Assembly (NCBI GenBank): GCA_973895155.1
Contig: OZ316899.1
Coordinates: forward strand, 705,573-769,572
From: Marsupella aquatica
Lineage: Eukaryota > Plantae > Marchantiophyta
Direction of reading: 5' to 3'
Length of the DNA stretch: 64,000 bases
The notes beneath the pieces are model-generated. The model did not search any database and was not told the DNA's origin. It saw nothing but the letters and a program-made list of their open reading frames with translations. Made by a program: the position numbers and the translations under genes. Shown one piece after another: positions 6,015 through 20,249 of this stretch; within the stretch, counting starts at the first letter, position 1, and each line of letters opens with the position of its first letter.

Positions 6015-6691
6015 ATGACGACTTCTTTGGCAGAAAATGACGTCGGATTACTTGCTCTGGCTGCATTGAGGAAGCTCAAAGGTAATTCTGACCTACATTT
6101 ATCGGTTTTCTATGGATTGTGCTAAACTTGAGTCTGCTCTACACGAGAGTCGTGTAGAATGGGTCTCTTTCATCGACCCATAGTCTCTATTTGAGAGCCA
6201 TTATGTCAGAATTTAGAATTTCTTGTTTAGTTCTACGCGAGTCTCGCATAGAACCGATTCTCCAATCTTGGAAGATAATGGATTTCTACGCGACTGTCGT
6301 GTAGAAACTCATGTTTTCTACGTGACTGTCGTGTAGAATCCTCGTTCGGAGATAGTACCATATGGAATCAAAACATTGTTCATGTGACTTTGTTCGTTTA
6401 ACTTTTCTAGAGGAAGGCACTCATCGCAAGGACGATTTTGAGAAGATTGAGGGATTGTTACAAAAAAGTATTTATGCTTTTGATATGAGTTTGATGGAGA
6501 ATTCCATTCTCCAAAAAGCGTTGGAGGAAGAAAAGGAAGCAATAGAATACGAGCGGGAGCAGATGTTTGCAAAGTATCGATGGGCACAGATCCAGCATTG
6601 ACTACTTGCAACGTAGCGGCAAAGTCCATGAAAGCTTCTCTTGAGATGGAGAAGTTTCGAGATCGTCAAGTTCATGACTTGCGACAGGAGC
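6015..6691 (+). pseudogene. Coiled-coil protein gene of the host element, 5' part; interrupted by the CACTA insertion
   Basis: ATG at 6015. A GT-AG intron 6082-6410 joins in frame (LRKLK-EEGTHRK). E/K/Q-rich heptad-like sequence with a frameshift near 6580-6600. Removing 6692-16667 and one TSD restores RQE-LADGRERERQLDTK. Confidence 0.6.
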
Positions 6692-9600
6692 CACTAGTAC
6701 ATTTTCAGCGTTTTTCCGATGCTCCGATATCGCGCCTCGTCACTCTTTCGATACTAATACCGTCGCATAGTTCTGATATTTTACCTTACGCAATTTGCCA
6801 TTATTTTTACATCGCATATTATTTTTCCGATACAAAAGCCATCGGTCCCTATTTCCATTATTTTTGGCATCGAAAGTGTTCCGATGCGGAGAGGATCGGA
6901 AATATCTCTGATAACTTTCATGAGGGGTTTGATGCAGATTGAATCGGATATTGCCACAATTGTAAGGCACTATGTTTCCGAGTACTTTCCATTGGTCACT
7001 ACATTGGACAGAGTGTGGGAAAACCAACATTCATAAGTTTATTAAGAAATGTGGTCACTCTCATAGGAGAGGGTACATGAAATAAAACAATCATAAAAAT
7101 AATGCCGGTAAAAGTAAACATTCAGAGGTGGTCCTATTTGATTGGTCCCAAGGTAGACTAGCAAGGACCTCAAGGCTCAGGGTCCAAATCTTCTACTACA
7201 ACTACATTGGGTCACTCCTGGACTATGGATCGTGATCGTGGAATATAACTCATGACAATGGACCACTCAGGATCATCGGGACAGGGAAGATAGAAGGCCT
7301 GCTCAAGATGATCAGGGAATGCAAATGGATTAGAGGTTCTCCAAGTTGAGCTAATGACACTATTTGCACCTGTCTTCAACCGTGTGAACCCACAAGCATC
7401 TTCTTTGCAAGTTTGGTTTTGGCCAACAAGGTTCATCCAAAACCATTTGCACTTCAACACCACCTCCTCCAAAGTGGTGTGTGCATGGTACTTTGCACTC
7501 AATATCTCTTCAATCTTTCCATAGTGGGCCACCATAGAGCGTATTGGATTCCTATCAGATATGCTACTTTGTGAATCTTGGGTGAACCAACCCATGACCC
7601 CACAATCTTGTGTAGCTGCCCTCTTGTCATCAAGTCGTTGCACATGAAAATGTCTTCCCTTTGACCACATGGCTGTCCGAGTTGTCACCGTAAGTAATGG
7701 TCCATGAACCAAGGTGCGAAGACTGTCTGTAACCAAGGGAAGTCTGACACACTCTCCCCTTGCTCCAACAAGGCATCAATCTCTATCAACTTTTCCCTCA
7801 TGTACGGGACAAACTTGGGGAAGTTGCGTGGCCGACGACTATTTGCCTTTTCCTCCTCATAAAAAGTTGTCCAATCTCCCACAATCTCAGGCGAGTTATA
7901 CAACATAAATGTAGTAAGTTGAAGACGCTCAGTTGAGCCCATAAGTTGTTCTCCCTTTTCCCCTGTGAGACGGTCATCCTCAAAGTCTGCTTCCCTTGAT
8001 GCCTCGTCTATCCAGCCCCTTGGAGCTTTGGGATCAAGTGTAGCTACAATGTTTGTACAATAAAACATGCTCTCTGCTCCAAGATGACGCTCAGCAATGC
8101 TACCTTCCACTCTTGCACGATTTGACACATATGACTTCATCACTCCCATATACCACTTTACCCAGTACATCCAACGACAATGTACCGGCCCTGCAATCGC
8201 AACCTCACGCACTAGGTGGAGGAGGAAGTGAACTTGACCATCAAAGAATGAAGGAGGGAGTGCCCTCTCCAACTTGCACAATACCTCCACTCCAAAAAGG
8301 TCCATCACTGCAATCTCATCCTCATTCACCTCTTTCTGACACACCCACCTCAAGAGCTTACCTAATGACCATAGGGCATCTCGAAGATCCTCACTACCCA
8401 ATCCAATAATTGCAACTGGAATGACATGTTCGAGTAACCGATGAAAATCATGTGTTTTCAGGTAAGATGGCCATTTTGGAGAATCATCACCCCCAAATGC
8501 CTTACAAAGATTGGCACCATAACCTGTGGGAAACCTCATTGACCCTATACGTTTTTGAAACTCAGTCCGCTCACCTCTGGTCAATACCCAAGGAGGGTGA
8601 ATAGTCATGGGGCATTAGGAGGATCCATAGATGGCCAAAACCCATGAGGGCCATGCATCCCCATCTCCTCACAACTCTCTCTCCAGTTGTTGTCTTTCTC
8701 TCCATATAGATGGCGAATCAATGACCTCCCAACATTCCCCTCAATGTGCATAGGGTCAAACAAATGGTTAATTGGCATCTCAGCCCAATATGACAGCTTT
8801 GACATTAATGCAGACAATCAAGTCATGCCACATCGGGCCAACTATAATGGATCATCCGGGTCTGTCACTCTATCCCATACATCTTTCCAATAATGTGGAT
8901 CCCTTGGCACTGGTTGAGGGCGTGTGTCTGGTTGGCCATCATCTGTGTCGTATAAGAATGGGTCACGCCTCCATTCATGCTCTGGGGGGAGATACTTTGT
9001 GTGACCAATGTAAACTATCTTCCGTAGGGTGGTAGACTTTGGGCGTGCCACTCCCTCCAAATCGGGCCCACAAGTTGGGCAAGCTCGATATCCCGAGACC
9101 TGCAACCCAGAGATATATCCAAACCCTACAATGTTCACACCCACTGCATACATTAAACAATGGCCAGGGGTCCAATATATGATAAACCAAGGCATAATTA
9201 ATATGGGGTGAGGTATATTATCCAGAAATGACAAACCATGCATAATTTATATGGGGTGAGGTATATTTCCACATACCCGGAAGATTGTGTATGGTCCACA
9301 TACAGATGGCTTTCAATTTAAATTCACGAGGTAAACCACCCGTAAGCACTCGACCATCATAGCAATCCACTCCTCTCCATAGTTGTTGAAGCTCCTCCAA
9401 CAATGGTTGCAAGTAAACATCAATCTTTTTTACTTGTTTGGGGCCTGGGATAATCATTGAGAGCAGCAAATGACCCTTCTTCATGGCCATCCATGGAGGG
9501 ATGTTATAATTTGTAAGGACTACTGGCCAAACTGAGTATGGTTGGGCCTTCCCTGCCAATGCAAAGGGGCTGATCCCATCTGATGCCAAACCTAGACGTA

Positions 9601-10506
9601 CATGACGTGGATCTGTCTTGAACTCACCCCATTGGTCCTCCACAAACCTATTGGCAGGTGAGTCCACCATCATACGCATGGTGGGCGGATCTGAAGTCAT
9701 ATCTGACCGGTTCTTGGAATGCCACACCATATACTCAGCCAACTCCGCACATCGGTACTGGTGCCGTAATCTAGGGATAAGAGGAAAATACCTCATGACC
9801 TTTTGTGCTACTTTTCCAGTGAGCATGTCCTCTCGATACCTCGGTTGGTCACATGTAGGACATGTAGTGGCATCTTTGTGTTCCCCCCTAAAGAGAACAC
9901 AATCATTCACACAAGCATGTATGACTTTGTATTTGAGACCTGTGGATTTCAACACCTTTTTTGCTGCTTTCTAGGAACTAGGCAAGCAGTTCCCTTCTGG
10001 CAAAATCCGACTATGCAAAGTCCTGAAAAGATCATCAAGAAGGAGATTGCTTGCACCATGTCTTTGTTGCAAGTTCAACAATAACATTATTCCTGATAGT
10101 CGAGACAACTGTGACCCCTCAAAAATCCTTGTTTGTGCATGGTCACGAGCTTCCTCCCATTGTCTAGAGTGGGAACCTTGACGTGAAGGAATGTCATGAT
10201 GAGCATGTGTTGTGGTGTCAAATGCATCACCCATACCATGGTCACCATCCTCTACGTCATAGAACTGGTGCATGAGATCATCCATGGCCCTCTCATCCTC
10301 AAGTCTGTCATTGGTGGCATTAGATACTTGCTCAGGAGGGATATCTTCATTCGCTGAAGCTTGAGCCCTACGCCAATCTTCCATGGCCTCGACAAGGTGT
10401 TGCCGCATTGCTCGTGATAATACCCCCACATCTGGTTGAACATACACATTCTAGCAGTTCACAAACATACATAAATATTAGAAGAGACCCACAATGAGAC
10501 AATTGT

Positions 10507-10533
10507 TTTAGGGTTTAGGGTTTAGGGTTTAGG
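10507..10533 (+). repeat. (TTTAGGG)n telomere-like/telobox tract inside a transposase intron
   Basis: Three full units plus TTTAGG. Confidence 0.9.
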
Positions 10534-10663
10534 ATTTATTTATACAAAGAACCAAATTTGTTTGGAAACCATTGTCATGTATTTTATGTTCAACAAAAGA
10601 GGTGGTATATACATGTCTGCCCTACACAGGGTGAGAAAGGAATGCTTTTTTGGGAGCATCCCA

Positions 10664-11125
10664 CTCATAGTCGCAAAACAACTCCTCGCCAGCCCTAATG
10701 GTTGTAATGGCTACAGTCATGACATGGTCATCCATGTGTTTTACATAATAAGGCTCTCTAGGTGGACCAAATATTTGTATCCACTCAACATTAGGCCTAA
10801 GTCCTCTCCCTCTCCCACGAGTACTATTGATGTACCTGGCTATGTTGTCGGAGCGAACAGGGTCCCCATCAATCATCCAAGAATGCCAAGGCCTCCGCAT
10901 GACCTCATCCGGATCAGAATCCATTTGCAATGCATAGACACCCCAAGATGGGTGTTGGCGCAATAGAATGTTCCAACTTTTTGAAGTGTATACGGGACCA
11001 ATATATGGAAATAGGTGCTCCCCATCATAACCTCGGGGCCATGGCTTTGTAGGGACCAAAATGTCCTCCAAGGCAAATACGCCAAATCCTATGTCAGGAC
11101 CAAGGGAGGATGTCTTCACTATCCA
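10664..11125 (-). CDS. SET-domain (lysine methyltransferase fold) segment within ORF 10622-11536
   Basis: SSLGPDIGFGVFA (GxG motif I), YIGPVY, IDG, ARYINS (RFINHS-like), PNV, IRAGEELFCDY (GEELxxDY with the catalytic Tyr), all in canonical order. Confidence 0.88.
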
Positions 11126-12858
11126 TTGGTGACCCCATATGTGGATAGGAGTGTCAATGGTTAGGCCAGGGGGTATTTTGAATCTCTCAGATGAGAAATC
11201 CTTCAAGATTGTCAATGCCTTCCCAGTGACATATGAAAGCCCCAACCTCCCTTCCACTTCCACATAGTCCTCTCCTGGCGGTACTCTATGAGTATGGTGC
11301 AGAACTTGGTCCTCGGTCTCATGCACACCCAAGGGTTCATAACGACGCCGTTGTCTTTGGGAACGTGCTCGGGTGCGACCAACCCTAGATGGAACTGGTA
11401 TAGTCTCCGGATCAACACAAGGGAGGCTACATTGAGGGGGATCTGATGATGCTGCTAACAACTCTCTTGCACCAGCCAAAAGTGTGTTTACCCATAAGTC
11501 ATTAGAGACCAATGGAGGAGAGGTCCTACGAGGCACCTATTCAATCACAAAAAATACCAACAATTAATAAATGTATGGGTGCAATGTTACAACTTGTGCA
11601 TATCAATGTCTCCAAGTGCAATAAATGATGCATACCTGGCGAGCAGAATATCCAAGTAAATCACCCTCATATCGGCCATAGTTTCTCAATGGGCTCAATG
11701 GCTTCCCAGGCTTGACAAACCACCATGCCTTTACATCTAACACACCAGCATGGAATAGGTCCTATAGGAGGAGGACATTGAGTCCGAGGAGGGGGAGGAG
11801 GAACGTCCCCCTCAGAAGATGACGAGGTTGAGTCTGAGTCCGACTCAGAACTCCCAGAACAGGACATCTGCCCATCATCCATACACAATGTCATTATATT
11901 TTAGAATCCGCGCCATTGTGATTTACATATATATGTCTTAAGGCAAAACAAAAAAATGTTTAAATCAATAATACCTTAATGAGACCCGTGCTCTGCAGTG
12001 CCAACTAGGATCTTGGCCTTAGACTATATGCTAAGACAAGTCTGAAATTACTGCACAAGAACACTTCAACTTAATTAGTGTGGAACAAGATCAATAATTA
12101 ACCTCTGTATGACCATAATTATAGTTGGCTAAGGGGCCGACCTATGTCGGGCACCTCCCAACATTCACCTCCAGAACCTTTTAGAGTGGTCCAACCATAC
12201 CTTTCAGACGTGCAGGCTCTCGCTGTGCATGCTGCATTACAAAAAATGGACCCCCAAAAAAGCTCAGCAACCTAACCCTCCGCAAAAACTGAGTGACTTA
12301 ACCCTCTGCAAAAAAGAACTGCAAAATTTGGCATGTCACTGTATGCATAAGGTTAGCTAGCTAGGTGAATCCATATTTTGCCCCCAAAATGTCACAATGT
12401 AAATACCACACAACTCTCAAATATAACTCGCAACATCTATACATATCAACCACCTCCAAACCACACAATGAGAAGGGACCGCGGCTCCAACGGTCCACCC
12501 TATCCCTAAAACCCTGCTTAAACACATAGAACCAACATAGGGTCATCAAACATACAACCAAATTAATTGCCATAGTTATTCTATCGGAAAAGACTTTGGA
12601 CATGAGTAATACAAGGAATTAACAAGAGGGGTCCGATGCTGTAAGAATCGGACATCCACTATGTTTCCGATAATTATAGCATCGCTTGTTCTGATGCTGT
12701 AAGAATCGGATCCATAGTCGGACAAGTTTTAGGTTTCTCGACCAAAGTGCCACTCCTTAGTCGGGCTTTGCATCGAAAGAGCTTCGGGAGATGTTTTCTT
12801 TGGCAAAAGCCGGGGAGGTGCGTGGTCGCAAACTGGAATTGAAGGCCGGGAGGAGCTT

Positions 12859-13996
12859 ATGGCTATGGAGGGGAACAATGGAGGGGCAAGAGGGGCAGGA
12901 GGTGGAGCCGGGGGAGCCGGAGCAGCCGGGGGAGCCGGAAGAGCCGGAGGATCTGCAGGAGATGGAGCCGGGCCATCTCAAAACTTTGGGGACATTATGA
13001 CAGCCATTTTTCAAACGCAAATAGGGCTCTCAATAGAAGTTGCACAACAGGTTGCTGCATTGACACAGGGATTGATTGACTCTTCAAAGGGCACAATTAT
13101 TTCAGAAGCTGAGAAAGCATTCGAGGAAAGGCAGCAGAGGGAGAAAGAAAAGAAGAGGAAGCGAAGGGATGAGAAGCGAAGCATCCCCGCGGAGGCCCTC
13201 TCACCAAGACAGAGAGAGAAAGCCCTGCGTAAAGAAGCACAGGCTGCAGAGAGGAAGAGAGCAGAGGAGGAGAAACAGCAAGCAGAGGAGCGAAGCAAGC
13301 GGCCAAAGCTGTTTTTGAATAGTGGAGGAGCTCCTAGGGCCAAGAGCTATAATCTCTTCAGGAGTCAGCTTGGGCAGGTACTTAGATCCCATTTTGGGGT
13401 GTTAGACTACTGGGGGAAGCAAAATGAACAGGAGAAATTCAGAGTTTGTGAGCAGGTGAAGGAGAGGTTTTCCAATGGATCATTCCTTGATGACAGGTTC
13501 TTGAATCAAAAAATCAGCCTCTCACTTGCAAACTCAAAGAACCATGTCAGGGAGAAGCTCAGGAAATACCTTGGTGAATGCAAGGAAAATGAGGAGGTGA
13601 TCAGGCAGAGGGGGTGCCCAGTTGATCTACCACCAGATGTATGGGCAGCTTGGATTGAGACCAAGCTACAAGTTCGAGCTTGGCAGGCAAGACGGTACTG
13701 GCAGGCCAAATTAGAAGAGCTTGCCACCAAGGCCCAAGCAGGGGAGACTGTTGACACCCGCCATGCTTAGAGCAACCTGCAGCATTGGGAAGCAAGATCA
13801 GTTCAGCTTGGAGACCCTCCCTAGCTCACAAATCATGAAAGCATTGCTTCGAGTTGACAATAGGCCAGTAATCACTCACCGGATGGGGCAGGGTGGGTCG
13901 CAGCGTCTCAAGGCAGAGTTTGTAAGTACTCCCCCTCCTCTGTCCAAGCTCCTCACCTCAATTTTGCCTGATCACCTGAGGCTTGTGTATGCCTAA
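12859..13996 (+). pseudogene. CACTA TnpA-like gene (Transposase_24/Ptta-like), probably continuing in low-complexity exons to ~15875
   Basis: Gly-rich N-terminus, charged coiled coil, helical region (CPVDLPPDVWAAW), then after a frameshift HRMGQGG...LKAEF, typical of Ptta/En-Spm TnpA-type proteins. Divergent from TnpD inside the TIRs. Confidence 0.65.
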
Positions 13997-15049
13997 AGAG
14001 CCCCGACCCAAAGCTAGTCCATTCTTATTGTCGAGGTGAGACCTGCAAGTCAAGCCCGCTCTCGACACTGTATTTTTTCTTTCCTGGGCCGTCTTTCCGA
14101 TACCGGTCCGATTTAGTCGGTATCGGACCCATAATCGGAAGTGTTATCACACCTTTTTTTGAAATTGGGGTCCGATTATGATCCGATAGTATCAGTATCG
14201 GATCAACATTCGGACAATGTGTCCAATATTTTAGCACGAGGGGTCCGATACTTGGGTAATCGGATAATTTGAATTTTTATCGGTAATCCTTGGTAGATTT
14301 GTTAGTAGGATCCAAAGGCCATTGTACATGTATTTGGGGGTGTGAGGATGTGGGACTACTTGGGGTGTGATAGGGAGGGACTAATGGGGGACAATTTGAT
14401 GTTGGGGCCATTTTGTGTGGGGTGTAGGAGCGTGAGCATGGGCGGCCAATCTTACCAGACGAGAGGGAGTTGGCTAAGAAGCACGGACCGCGAGCTCTCA
14501 AGATTCACATGGAGGAGGAGTTGGGTTTGGTATGGACAATCCTTTGAATGCAATGTCTTAATTGGTTGATGAAAATTTTGTGGTAAGATGGAGCATACAC
14601 TAATTGGATTGCTAGTTGGATATATGTAGGGATCAGAGGAGGAGGGGTTGGAGGGTGAGGACTCGGAGGAGGGCTCAAGGGCGGACGATTCAGATGCAGA
14701 GTCATTGGGCCCAGAGGAGGCAATTGTGGCTGCACCCACATCTCGCCGGTCTGGAGCAGTTAGGGACCGTGTTAGTGGTCCTCGCCACTCGACTTGACGG
14801 GGTGAGGATCATGGTGTTCCAGCGTCACAAAGTAGGGCCGGCAAAGGTGGTGCTAGTCGGGCCCCTAGCGCACACCAGTCAAGAGCCATAGGGGTTGGTT
14901 CTAGTGGCCGACGCCAATCAGGGGTTGCTGGTAGAGCTGACACTCAGGGCCCGCGACATGTTGTTGCACAACATGCCGTTGGTGGGTCTCGCCGATTAGA
15001 GCCCCGCGGGGAAGGGTGTTCTAGCGGCTCTCAGTAGTTAGGCGTAGTT

Positions 15050-15600
15050 GGGAGTGGCTCTGGAGGCTCTGGCCACTCTGGCCACACTGGGGGTGGCCAG
15101 GTTGGAGGGAGTGCAGCCGACGGTGGAGGGTCTTGGCACTCTGGCCGCACTGGGGGCGGCCAGTCTGGAGGGAGTGCAGGCGGTGGTGGTGCAGTCTCTC
15201 ACCATGGAGGCAGCACTGGGAGTGGTCGACATGCCCTTGGCCAGTCTGGAGGGAGTGCAAGCGGTGGTGGTGGAGTCTCTCACCATGGAGGCAGCACTAG
15301 GGGTGGTTGACATGCCCCTGGCCAGTACGGAGGGAGTGCAGGTAGTGGTGGTGGTGTCTCTCAACATGCGGGCAGCACTGGGGGTGGTCGACATGCCCCT
15401 GGCCAGTCTGGAGGGAGTGCAGGCAGTGGTGGCGGTGTCTCTCAGCATGCAGGCAGCATTGGGGGTGGTGGACATGCCTCTGGCACGTCTGGAGGGAGTG
15501 GAGGCGGTGGTGGTGGGGTCTCTCACCACTCAGGTCCTCCAGCGGCTAGCCATGGTGCCCCTAGCCAGTCAGGAGGGAGTGGTGGTGGTGGTGGTGAGTC
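15050..15600 (+). repeat. GC-rich minisatellite, ~81-bp unit x ~4.5 plus shorter related units
   Basis: GGCAGCA(C/T)T...GACATGCC recurs every ~81 bp. The Gly/Ser/His-rich frame reads HGGSTGSGRHALGQSGGSASGGGGVSH. Confidence 0.85.
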
Positions 15601-16133
15601 ACGACGTTCTACTGCCAATGGGACTAGTGGGGGGGGGTCCTGTAGCTTCCTTTCATACTTGCCGAGGTAGCGAAGAGGGTGTGCCCTCTCATGGCTCAGG
15701 GGCTTCCCATGGTGGTGGTGGTGGGGTTGGTCCACTTCCTCATGTTGCCTCTACACTTGGGACAGACGACCTGGACCAAGCCAATATGGACCAGACCACA
15801 TTCACCGAGGCTTCTCCACCCCCACCTCCACGGACTTGTTCCAAAAAGAGGAAGGGACGACATGCTCCATTTTGAGCTGGTAGCAAGTCAGATAGTTGAC
15901 CAACATGTGTAGAGTAGAGGCCTAGTGTATTAGGGCAAAAAGTGTAGACCATATGGGGCAGGCTGCTATTTCTTATTTGATCCGAGTGGATCACACTTGT
16001 ACATATTGGGGTCTATATGTATATATTCATTTTAGGGGCTTGAGTACCCTTTTTGGCCATGCATGGGTTCTAATTAGATCTAGTTGCATGGTTGTTTCAA
16101 TAAGCTCCAAAATGCCTCCAAAACACCCCTACA

Positions 16134-16177
16134 CCTAACCCTCACCCTCACCCTAACCCTAACCCTAACCCCCTAAA
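16134..16177 (-). repeat. Degenerate (TTAGGG)n-type tract near the right CACTA end
   Basis: Plus strand reads CCTAAC CCTCAC CCTCAC CCTAAC CCTAAC CCTAAC CCCCTAAA. Confidence 0.8.
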
Positions 16178-16667
16178 TATGCTAATAAGCGTGGCATCCC
16201 CCCTTCCCAAAGAACTCTTTCCGATGCCATTCCGATACTTAAATCATCCCACTCCATCCAACTAAAACCACGCCCTTCCGATGCACTTTGTATTGGACTT
16301 TCCCATTCCAGAACATTCGGATCTTCCAAATCTTACCGCATCAGAACTTGCAATACTAATAATATCGGATATTCCAAAGTTTCAACCAACGGACACTAAT
16401 CGGACACGAACTAAACAGAACAGGCAAAAAAGTGGTGGTCTGATACTTCCGGCATCGGATAGTAAAATATCCAATATTTTAGATCACGGATGGTCCGATG
16501 AAGGTAATATCGGTGTTTCTGAGAGTTGTCCGATGGTCTATATCCGATGTGCAGAAAATGGCATGTATCGATATTGTGGTAATCGGAAGTTCCAAAAATC
16601 TGGTCGCAAGTTGTCGAAGGGTTCCAATACTTTCATTGTCGGAAAAGGGCGATAAAATGTACTAGTG

Positions 16668-19400: not shown

Positions 19401-20249
19401 GACCAAGTGAAACATGCAAGAATGCAATACAATGATATGGGGCGACCAGCTCGTCCACTTCCATCGGGTCGGAAATCTCCAGAATTTCAGGTAGGTTCTC
19501 CATGAGAGTTGTGAACAAAATTCAGACACTTTGTCCTTCTCTCCTTTCTATGCGAGGGTCGTGTAGAGCCTTTCCAATATTTTGGGATTCAAAACTTTGA
19601 GCTGGCTAACTTTGAGTTGTTTGGTCTTTCCTCCCAGGAGTATGAAACACTTGCAAAAGTTATGTTAAAGGTGAATAGTATCAGCGAGTACAATTGGATT
19701 TTGTTTGCTCCCGAGAAGCTCTACTCTTTATGGAGAGAGGTTTGCAATAATTGGCTCAAGGGTAATCTTTTGGATTCAACCGGACAAATGACTGGAAAAT
19801 CGAAAGAAGCAAAACAGTTGACAGGGACAACATTCCGGGTTTTTGAGGGTGCCGTAGAATCCGACATCTTGGAAATCCTCCACAAAGTGAATTTGGGGGA
19901 GGCGGTTTTGATGAAAAAGAAACATGCTTTGACTGATCTTCCCGCCATGTCAGAATTGGCAAGAAAAGCAAAGTATACTGACAAACTTAAGGGGGCAACA
20001 CTTCGATTCTATCGGGAGAAGTACGAAGGGGTTTTCTCGCAAGGATCAACTTGGGGTGATGTAGTTCAGCAATATAATTTCACTGATGAGGAATTGGATC
20101 GTTGTTGTGCAATGGTGGACATTGGATATTTCAAGAGCCTTGTGAAGGTGTCATTAAAAGTAGAGATGCTAGAGCCACTGAAAAATAGGTTGAGAAATAT
20201 TCACCAAAAGAGGTTTGGCGGCCATCTCCGTGCAAGGATGGATCCTTAC

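Follow-up and report, generated by a model that had tools for sequence, protein, structure and literature searches.

A predicted SET-domain exon inside the transposase gene of a bryophyte CACTA transposon lineage

The DNA analyzed here, referred to as the window, is a stretch of 64,000 nucleotides from Marsupella aquatica (assembly GCA_973895155.1, contig OZ316899.1, positions 705,573 to 769,572). It contains a CACTA transposon of the En/Spm type whose transposase gene includes an open reading frame (ORF) for a SET domain (Table 1). The SET exon is located between the exon for the N-terminal CxCxxC domain of the transposase and the exons for its catalytic part, an arrangement that is found in a CACTA lineage of bryophytes. 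An earlier note on this DNA had proposed an in-frame fusion of SET to the transposase, similar to that of SETMAR. Part of this proposal was upheld, as the SET domain is real, belongs to the element, and is in frame with the CxCxxC exon. The fusion to the transposase itself was not supported as the conserved state, since the SET ORF stops and the splice donor that would be needed is not conserved. The best reading of the data, which we hold with moderate confidence, is that alternative splicing would produce two proteins from a single transcription unit, namely a short protein combining the Transposase-associated (Transpos_assoc) domain with SET and a transposase devoid of SET.

The identity of the SET domain was assessed by profile, motif, and structure comparisons. 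The Pfam profile PF00856 (SET) matched ORF 10622-11536 with a score of 36.7 bits, above the cut-off of 22.4, the alignment extending from residues 150 to 290 and covering profile positions 1 to 104 out of 105. The SET core spans approximately residues 138 to 295 of the 304-codon ORF and the motifs GFG, RYINST, and GEELFCDY occur in this order, in agreement with the assignment made in the earlier note. A model obtained with AlphaFold2 from an alignment of 40 family sequences had a predicted local distance difference test (pLDDT) score of 90.6 and a predicted template modeling (pTM) score of 0.86. The top Foldseek matches of the model were all SET enzymes (SETD8, Legionella LegAS4, MLL1, NSD1, DIM-5, and ATXR5), with a probability of 1.00 and a template modeling (TM) score by target of about 0.6. 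Taken together, the sequence and the model indicate that the ORF encodes a genuine SET fold. Assignment to a SET subfamily by Foldseek was rejected because SETD8, LegAS4, MLL, NSD, and SUV39 enzymes matched about equally well. The ESM Atlas returned generic SET clusters without subfamily signal, and a search of solved structures by sequence with the family profile gave no significant match.

Across the 40 family sequences, GxG, Y, N..NS, PN, and GxE..Y are near-invariant. The histidine of the canonical NHS motif is replaced by serine in the whole family, the asparagine being retained; the NST variant previously noticed in the window is therefore a family-wide feature. Owing to this replacement, catalysis by the SET protein is not assured, and lysine methyltransferase activity is best described as plausible. 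The substitution also raises the possibility that the domain was kept as a pseudo-enzyme, binding for instance histone tails or S-adenosylmethionine (SAM) without methylating a lysine. The near-invariance of the N-S pair and the absence of any solved SET enzyme among the sequence-level matches are consistent with this explanation, as is the fact that SUV39-type enzymes are inactivated by mutation of the NHS histidine. However, the GxG motif, the SAM-contacting asparagine, the PN pair, and the catalytic tyrosine of GEELxxxY are all conserved, and PR/SET enzymes lacking the NHS histidine, such as PRDM9, are active. We consider a pseudo-enzyme unlikely.

Upstream from SET, exon 1 begins with an ATG codon at position 11894 and ends with the phase-0 donor CAG/GTATGC (slashes indicate splice junctions). 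The Transposase-associated family (PF13963), which usually forms the N-terminus of CACTA transposases in plants, was the only Pfam family matched by more than one of the 12 members tested for this exon. The matches were weak (5 of the 12 members, best E value of 0.0022). Since no other family was matched repeatedly, exon 1 is predicted to encode a divergent Transposase-associated domain. The intron separating exon 1 from SET is in phase 0, as read previously, and L004, L001, the metagenome subfamily, L030, and L031 (locus numbers of the comparison described below) share its donor and acceptor. Exon 1 leads into SET in frame in all lineages, and the two form one continuous ORF in Riccia and in several other members of the family.

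Relatives of the SET protein were retrieved by a word-indexed protein search, which returned 4 sequences, and by an exhaustive HMMER search, which returned 118 among 1.84 billion representatives. The named organisms among the latter were the liverworts Riccia sorocarpa and Calypogeia fissa. Thirty-one related loci were compared. Seventeen of these loci extend far enough downstream from SET (L001, L005-L007, L009, L010, L012, L013, L017-L021, L024, L025, L030, and L031); they originate from R. sorocarpa, the named host of members of the SET-CACTA lineage, and from metagenome or read-assembly contigs. In all 17, ex3, the first transposase-specific exon, and Transposase_21 come after SET on its own strand, including across lineages whose SET proteins are only 40–50% identical. 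The earlier note had considered that other family members might lack the SET exon or that the domain might show no purifying selection. SET and transposase were found together in 17 of 17 loci, and the proportion of nonsynonymous differences between subfamilies (pN, 0.21–0.28) was far below that of synonymous differences (pS, 0.67–0.86, a saturated range). Inside the young metagenome subfamily, dN/dS ranged from 0.4 to 1.3. This ratio was rejected as a measure of selection because values close to 1 reflect the neutral decay of copies after insertion and are uninformative on selection; the comparison between subfamilies was used for this reason. Among genomic copies, 10 of the 14 listed variants of the SET ORF fell at third codon positions (p = 0.004). 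In sequencing runs of two organisms, the family of the window was present at high depth in short collapsed contigs, indicating that it is a multi-copy repeat. The SET coding sequence lies inside the element and is conserved among its members, as for accessory SET genes of the HarbingerS and Plavaka PAG2 type. From these comparisons, the SET module belongs to the CACTA element, has travelled with the lineage for a long time rather than resulting from a one-off capture, and is under selection as a transposon-borne, conserved unit.

The relationship between SET and the downstream exons was deduced from the phases of the splice sites. In nearly all of approximately 50 family members, the SET ORF reaches its stop codon 1 to 13 codons past the DYxW motif. 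In the best sampled group, the metagenome subfamily, no GT dinucleotide occurs between the codon for the catalytic tyrosine and the stop in 8 of 10 copies, and the remaining two contain a GT in the wrong phase. A compatible phase-0 donor at the 3' end of SET is likewise missing from loci L002, L007, L030, and L031. The spacer that follows is full of stop codons and differs in length among relatives by numbers that are not multiples of 3. The earlier note had considered the donor at this end uncertain and had allowed that SET could be a separate product; across lineages, this donor is not conserved. The acceptor of ex3 is in phase 0 in every lineage examined, and a phase-0 donor of the GAG/GTA type is present after the Transpos_assoc domain in all lineages, including the Riccia loci that have no intron before SET. 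Since the donor at the 3' end of SET is not conserved and the exon 1 and ex3 sites are both in phase 0, the exon 1 donor is the sole conserved in-frame partner of ex3. Conserved splice sites joining the SET frame to the transposase, as a SETMAR-like fusion would require, were not found: the SET ORF stops, and most lineages have no compatible donor.

These observations suggest that the conserved product containing SET would be a Transpos_assoc-SET protein of approximately 300–500 amino acids, terminating at the stop codon located just past the domain. The transcription unit would also yield the transposase, exon 1 being spliced straight to ex3 and SET skipped. Such a mode of expression has a precedent in the En/Spm element of maize, in which TnpA and TnpD arise by alternative splicing. 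The N-terminal module common to the two proteins could bring SET to copies of the element or to the transposition complex. A broader proposal is that a transposon lineage of land plants has for a long time kept a histone-lysine "writer" of its own, which would share the N-terminal targeting domain of the transposase through alternative splicing and would mark chromatin at the copies of the element or at its insertion sites. We advance this proposal tentatively and regard it as possible rather than probable. If correct, the expected effect would be to counter silencing by the host or to tune the activity of the element itself.

Several observations weigh against production of two proteins by alternative splicing. 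The stop codon of SET is preceded by G in 5 to 6 independent lineages, including the window, L002, L007, L030, and L031, thereby generating a GTAG or GTAA sequence that resembles a phase-2 donor and could be a real one. A search for acceptors compatible with this phase-2 site gave a match in L031 only. A phase-0 GT precedes the SET stop in the window, L005, and L006, where inclusion of SET is possible; the positions of these dinucleotides are non-homologous, and their scatter is probably what chance would give. Many of the compared loci are decayed copies in which splice sites may be mutated. The four sequencing runs with matches to the family had the character of genomic Logan contigs, being short and very deep and retaining introns, and the run searches listed no RNA-Seq data. 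Contig joints detected inside 11547-11632 were rejected as splicing events because they correspond to length variants of the intron. Finally, the family-wide serine in the NHS motif bears on catalysis by the short protein, as discussed above.

The main alternative for the architecture of the products is a true fusion, in which SET would be an internal in-frame cassette spliced from a donor located before its stop to ex3, resulting in a single Transpos_assoc-SET-transposase polypeptide. In the window, the candidate phase-0 donor CCT/GTGTAG (10627-10626), located just before the SET stop, and the phase-0 acceptor TAG/AAT would together remove 177 nucleotides in frame. In the Riccia locus L005, the sites TTG/GTATCC and TGTAG/ATA define an in-frame intron of 102 nucleotides, which figures in the deposited model P0049. 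SET would then have a phase-0 intron on either side, the pattern that exon shuffling predicts, and three deposited Riccia gene models combine SET with Transposase_21. However, the position of the donor is not conserved, most lineages having either no donor or one in another phase, and nearly all ORFs of the family end within a few codons of SET. The Riccia models are also unreliable. Model P0049 was rejected as evidence of a fusion because one of its exons is off the frame of the conserved CxCxxC ORF and the copy is degenerate, and model P0069 because it skips half of the SET domain. More generally, the gene models over L005 and L006 (R. sorocarpa GCA_046195345.1) mix frames and skip conserved exons. 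Database entries combining SET and Transposase_21 in this species should not be read as support for a fusion, which we judge improbable.

Recent capture of a host gene fragment without any role for the element (transduplication), a process known for plant CACTA elements and for which a stand-alone homologue among host genes of C. fissa could be invoked, is very improbable and is effectively refuted by the arrangement shared by the 17 diverged loci and by the ratio of pN to pS in frames that stay open, SET being in addition spliced in frame to the first exon of the transposase itself.

The stand-alone homologue of C. fissa (L008 10001-11512, protein P0067, paralogue P0137) is a single-exon gene for a protein of 503 amino acids, located between host genes for a mitochondrial ribosomal protein and FtsH, and no transposase was present within 10 kb. 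Its N-terminus is cysteine-rich and differs from that of the family. This gene could be a host progenitor of the SET module or a domesticated copy.

Classification of the element of the window as CACTA/En-Spm is based on terminal inverted repeats (TIRs) starting with CACTA, on domains of a TnpD-type transposase, whose gene is broken in this copy, and on subterminal repeats. The TIRs are identical over 14 of 14 nucleotides. Chance alone should yield about one perfect inverted pair of 14-mers in 22 kb. The pair is nevertheless credible because it begins with CACTA, faces outward, brackets the transposase, and is accompanied by appropriately placed subterminal motifs. The motif TTCCGATG has four matches in the 64-kb window, all located at most 450 bp from either end of the element, and additional copies of TTCCGAT and ATCGGAA were found. 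The earlier note had described both 14-bp TIRs and a target-site duplication; the former were found to be perfect, whereas the adjoining triplets, AGC and AGT, agree at only two of three bases, leaving the duplication imperfect.

The copy present in the window is decayed, its ends and its SET ORF happening to be intact. Exon 1 contains a frameshift of 1 nucleotide, and the conserved coding sequence of the transposase is interrupted by a nonsense codon at 9971-9973 and by two frameshifts further downstream. The reading frame of the ATG and the CxCxxC motif of exon 1 differs from that of its donor end (...GYSARQ), so that the exon described by the earlier note is not open as a whole. Relatives and other genomic copies are one base shorter at about 11682, and exon 1 of the closest relative, L004, is open throughout. 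In the transposase, other genomic copies contain an additional G after 8608 and an additional A after 7734, and the L012 transposase is in one frame across the positions shifted in the window. The ex3 frame starts at 10450, immediately behind a TAG acceptor. The exon that the earlier note had assigned to Transposase_21 opens at this position, but the Pfam match begins in ORF 9221-9955.

Table 1. Coordinates of the CACTA element of the window and of its parts.
Feature	Position	Strand	Remarks
Exon 1	11636..11894	(-)	Ser/Asp-rich N-terminus and CxCxxC...H..GR(H/Y) domain; 1-nt frameshift near 11682-11689
Intron between exon 1 and SET	11537..11635 (99 nt)	(-)	Phase 0, GT..AG: CAG/GTATGC ... AATAG/GTG
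SET exon/ORF	10622..11536 (304 codons)	(-)	Open in this copy; TAG stop at 10622-10624
Spacer or intron, non-coding	10451..10621	(-)	From SET stop to next exon; acceptor CTGCTAG/AAT at its end
ex3, first transposase-specific exon (NVYVQPDVGVLSRAMRQ...)	9971..10450	(-)	Phase-0 acceptor kept in all lineages; nonsense codon 9971-9973 ends the exon here
Transposase_21 (tnp2) catalytic region, two overlapping frames	8845..9955	(-)	Pfam PF02992, E values 4.6e-39 and 4.5e-09
Transposase C-terminal part (DUF4218, DUF4216)	7212..8817	(-)	Pfam; frameshifts near 8608 and 7734
Whole CACTA element	6692..16667 (9,976 bp)	(-)	Strand of the transposase transcription unit; TIRs and subterminal motifs
Left TIR	6692..6705	(+)	Perfect 14-nt pair; adjoining triplet AGC
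Right TIR	16654..16667	(-)	Perfect 14-nt pair; adjoining triplet AGT
ORF of 303 codons, divergent from the transposase unit	12859..13770	(+)	No Pfam family; conserved upstream of exon 1 in relatives

Additional features were detected in and around the element. The predicted product of ORF 12859-13770 starts with a Gly/Ala-rich region followed by a Lys/Glu-rich middle. Homologues were found by tblastn in six metagenome loci (L011, L013, L014, L026, L027, and L029), on the opposite strand and approximately 1 kb upstream from exon 1, and this ORF may be the second gene of the element. The spacer following SET contains an AATAAA sequence and a telomere-like (CCCTAAA)n run. Such runs, including the variant CCCTAACCC, occur inside the element at 10505-10535, in the spacer, and at 16127-16171, near the right end. 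The former run accounts for a peak of depth at 10339-10700 in the sequencing runs. Also inside the element and near its right end, the region 15038-15875 is G+C-rich and open on both strands, with a tandem coding-like unit (repeats of approximately 28 residues, ...GVVDMPLASLEGVQAVVV...). Related palindromes of the TCTACGCGAG..CTCGCATAGAA type are present on both sides of the CACTA element, at 6136-6253 and 19543-19569. Since these palindromes flank both sides, the CACTA copy appears to be nested in another element.

Transposons carrying chromatin-modifying enzymes are rare and illustrate how mobile DNA can act on epigenetic silencing by the host. The lineage described here is attractive in this respect because it is found in land plants, has named members in an annotated liverwort genome, and offers many diverged copies for evolutionary analysis. 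With SET located within the transposase gene, a single targeting domain could serve both products, providing a concrete system for asking whether a SET protein encoded by a transposon writes histone marks at the copies of that transposon. If the protein were inactive or unexpressed, the finding would shrink to a well-conserved but ordinary accessory ORF.

SET domains have been associated with DNA transposons in several contexts. SETMAR, the SET-mariner gene of primates, resembles the bryophyte element in combining SET and DNA-transposase sequences in one transcription unit. SETMAR is a single-copy domesticated host gene, formed when a host SET gene captured an immobile copy of Hsmar1. In contrast, the bryophyte element is a multi-copy transposon bounded by TIRs, for which the data do not support a fused polypeptide as the conserved product. 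Helitrons carrying SET genes have also been described. As cited in PMC12730594, a Repbase Reports entry (Kojima and Jurka, 2014) describes HarbingerS elements and MuDR elements of Phytophthora that encode SET proteins. These are, likewise, DNA transposons maintaining a gene resembling those of SET histone-lysine methyltransferases; on the basis of their description, they differ in belonging to other transposon superfamilies and to other hosts (oomycetes and others). Further parallels are provided by fungal KDZ/Plavaka transposons, which carry TET/JBP genes, and by VANDAL, which encodes the anti-silencing factor VANC (PMC12730594). In both cases, epigenetic marks are the target of an enzyme or factor carried by a transposon, but the chemistry is oxidation of DNA bases or non-enzymatic hypomethylation, and the hosts are different.

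Also among the closest systems are the Plavaka elements of the red alga Bostrychia moritziana, members of the EnSpm/CACTA superfamily whose accessory gene PAG2 combines a DNA methylase (PF01555) with SET (PF00856) (bioRxiv 10.1101/2025.02.11.637652). The earlier note knew of no described SET-bearing CACTA transposase, a statement that is weakened by this gene. In both systems a DNA transposon of the CACTA superfamily contains a SET coding sequence as part of the element. By its description, PAG2 is a separate accessory gene with a DNA methylase domain, whereas the bryophyte SET is an internal part of the transposase gene, linked in frame to the N-terminal domain of the transposase, and has no DNA methylase domain. 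The literature searches gave no paper describing SET in a CACTA lineage of bryophytes. Maize En/Spm offers the parallel for expression, as one CACTA unit gives rise to two proteins that share a first exon, a transposase and an accessory protein; for the bryophyte element, this mode of expression is suggested by splice-site phases only, and TnpA of maize has no SET domain. Since transposon-carried SET domains have already been described, the new aspects concern the host group, the location of SET within the transposase gene, and its link to the N-terminal domain of the transposase itself.

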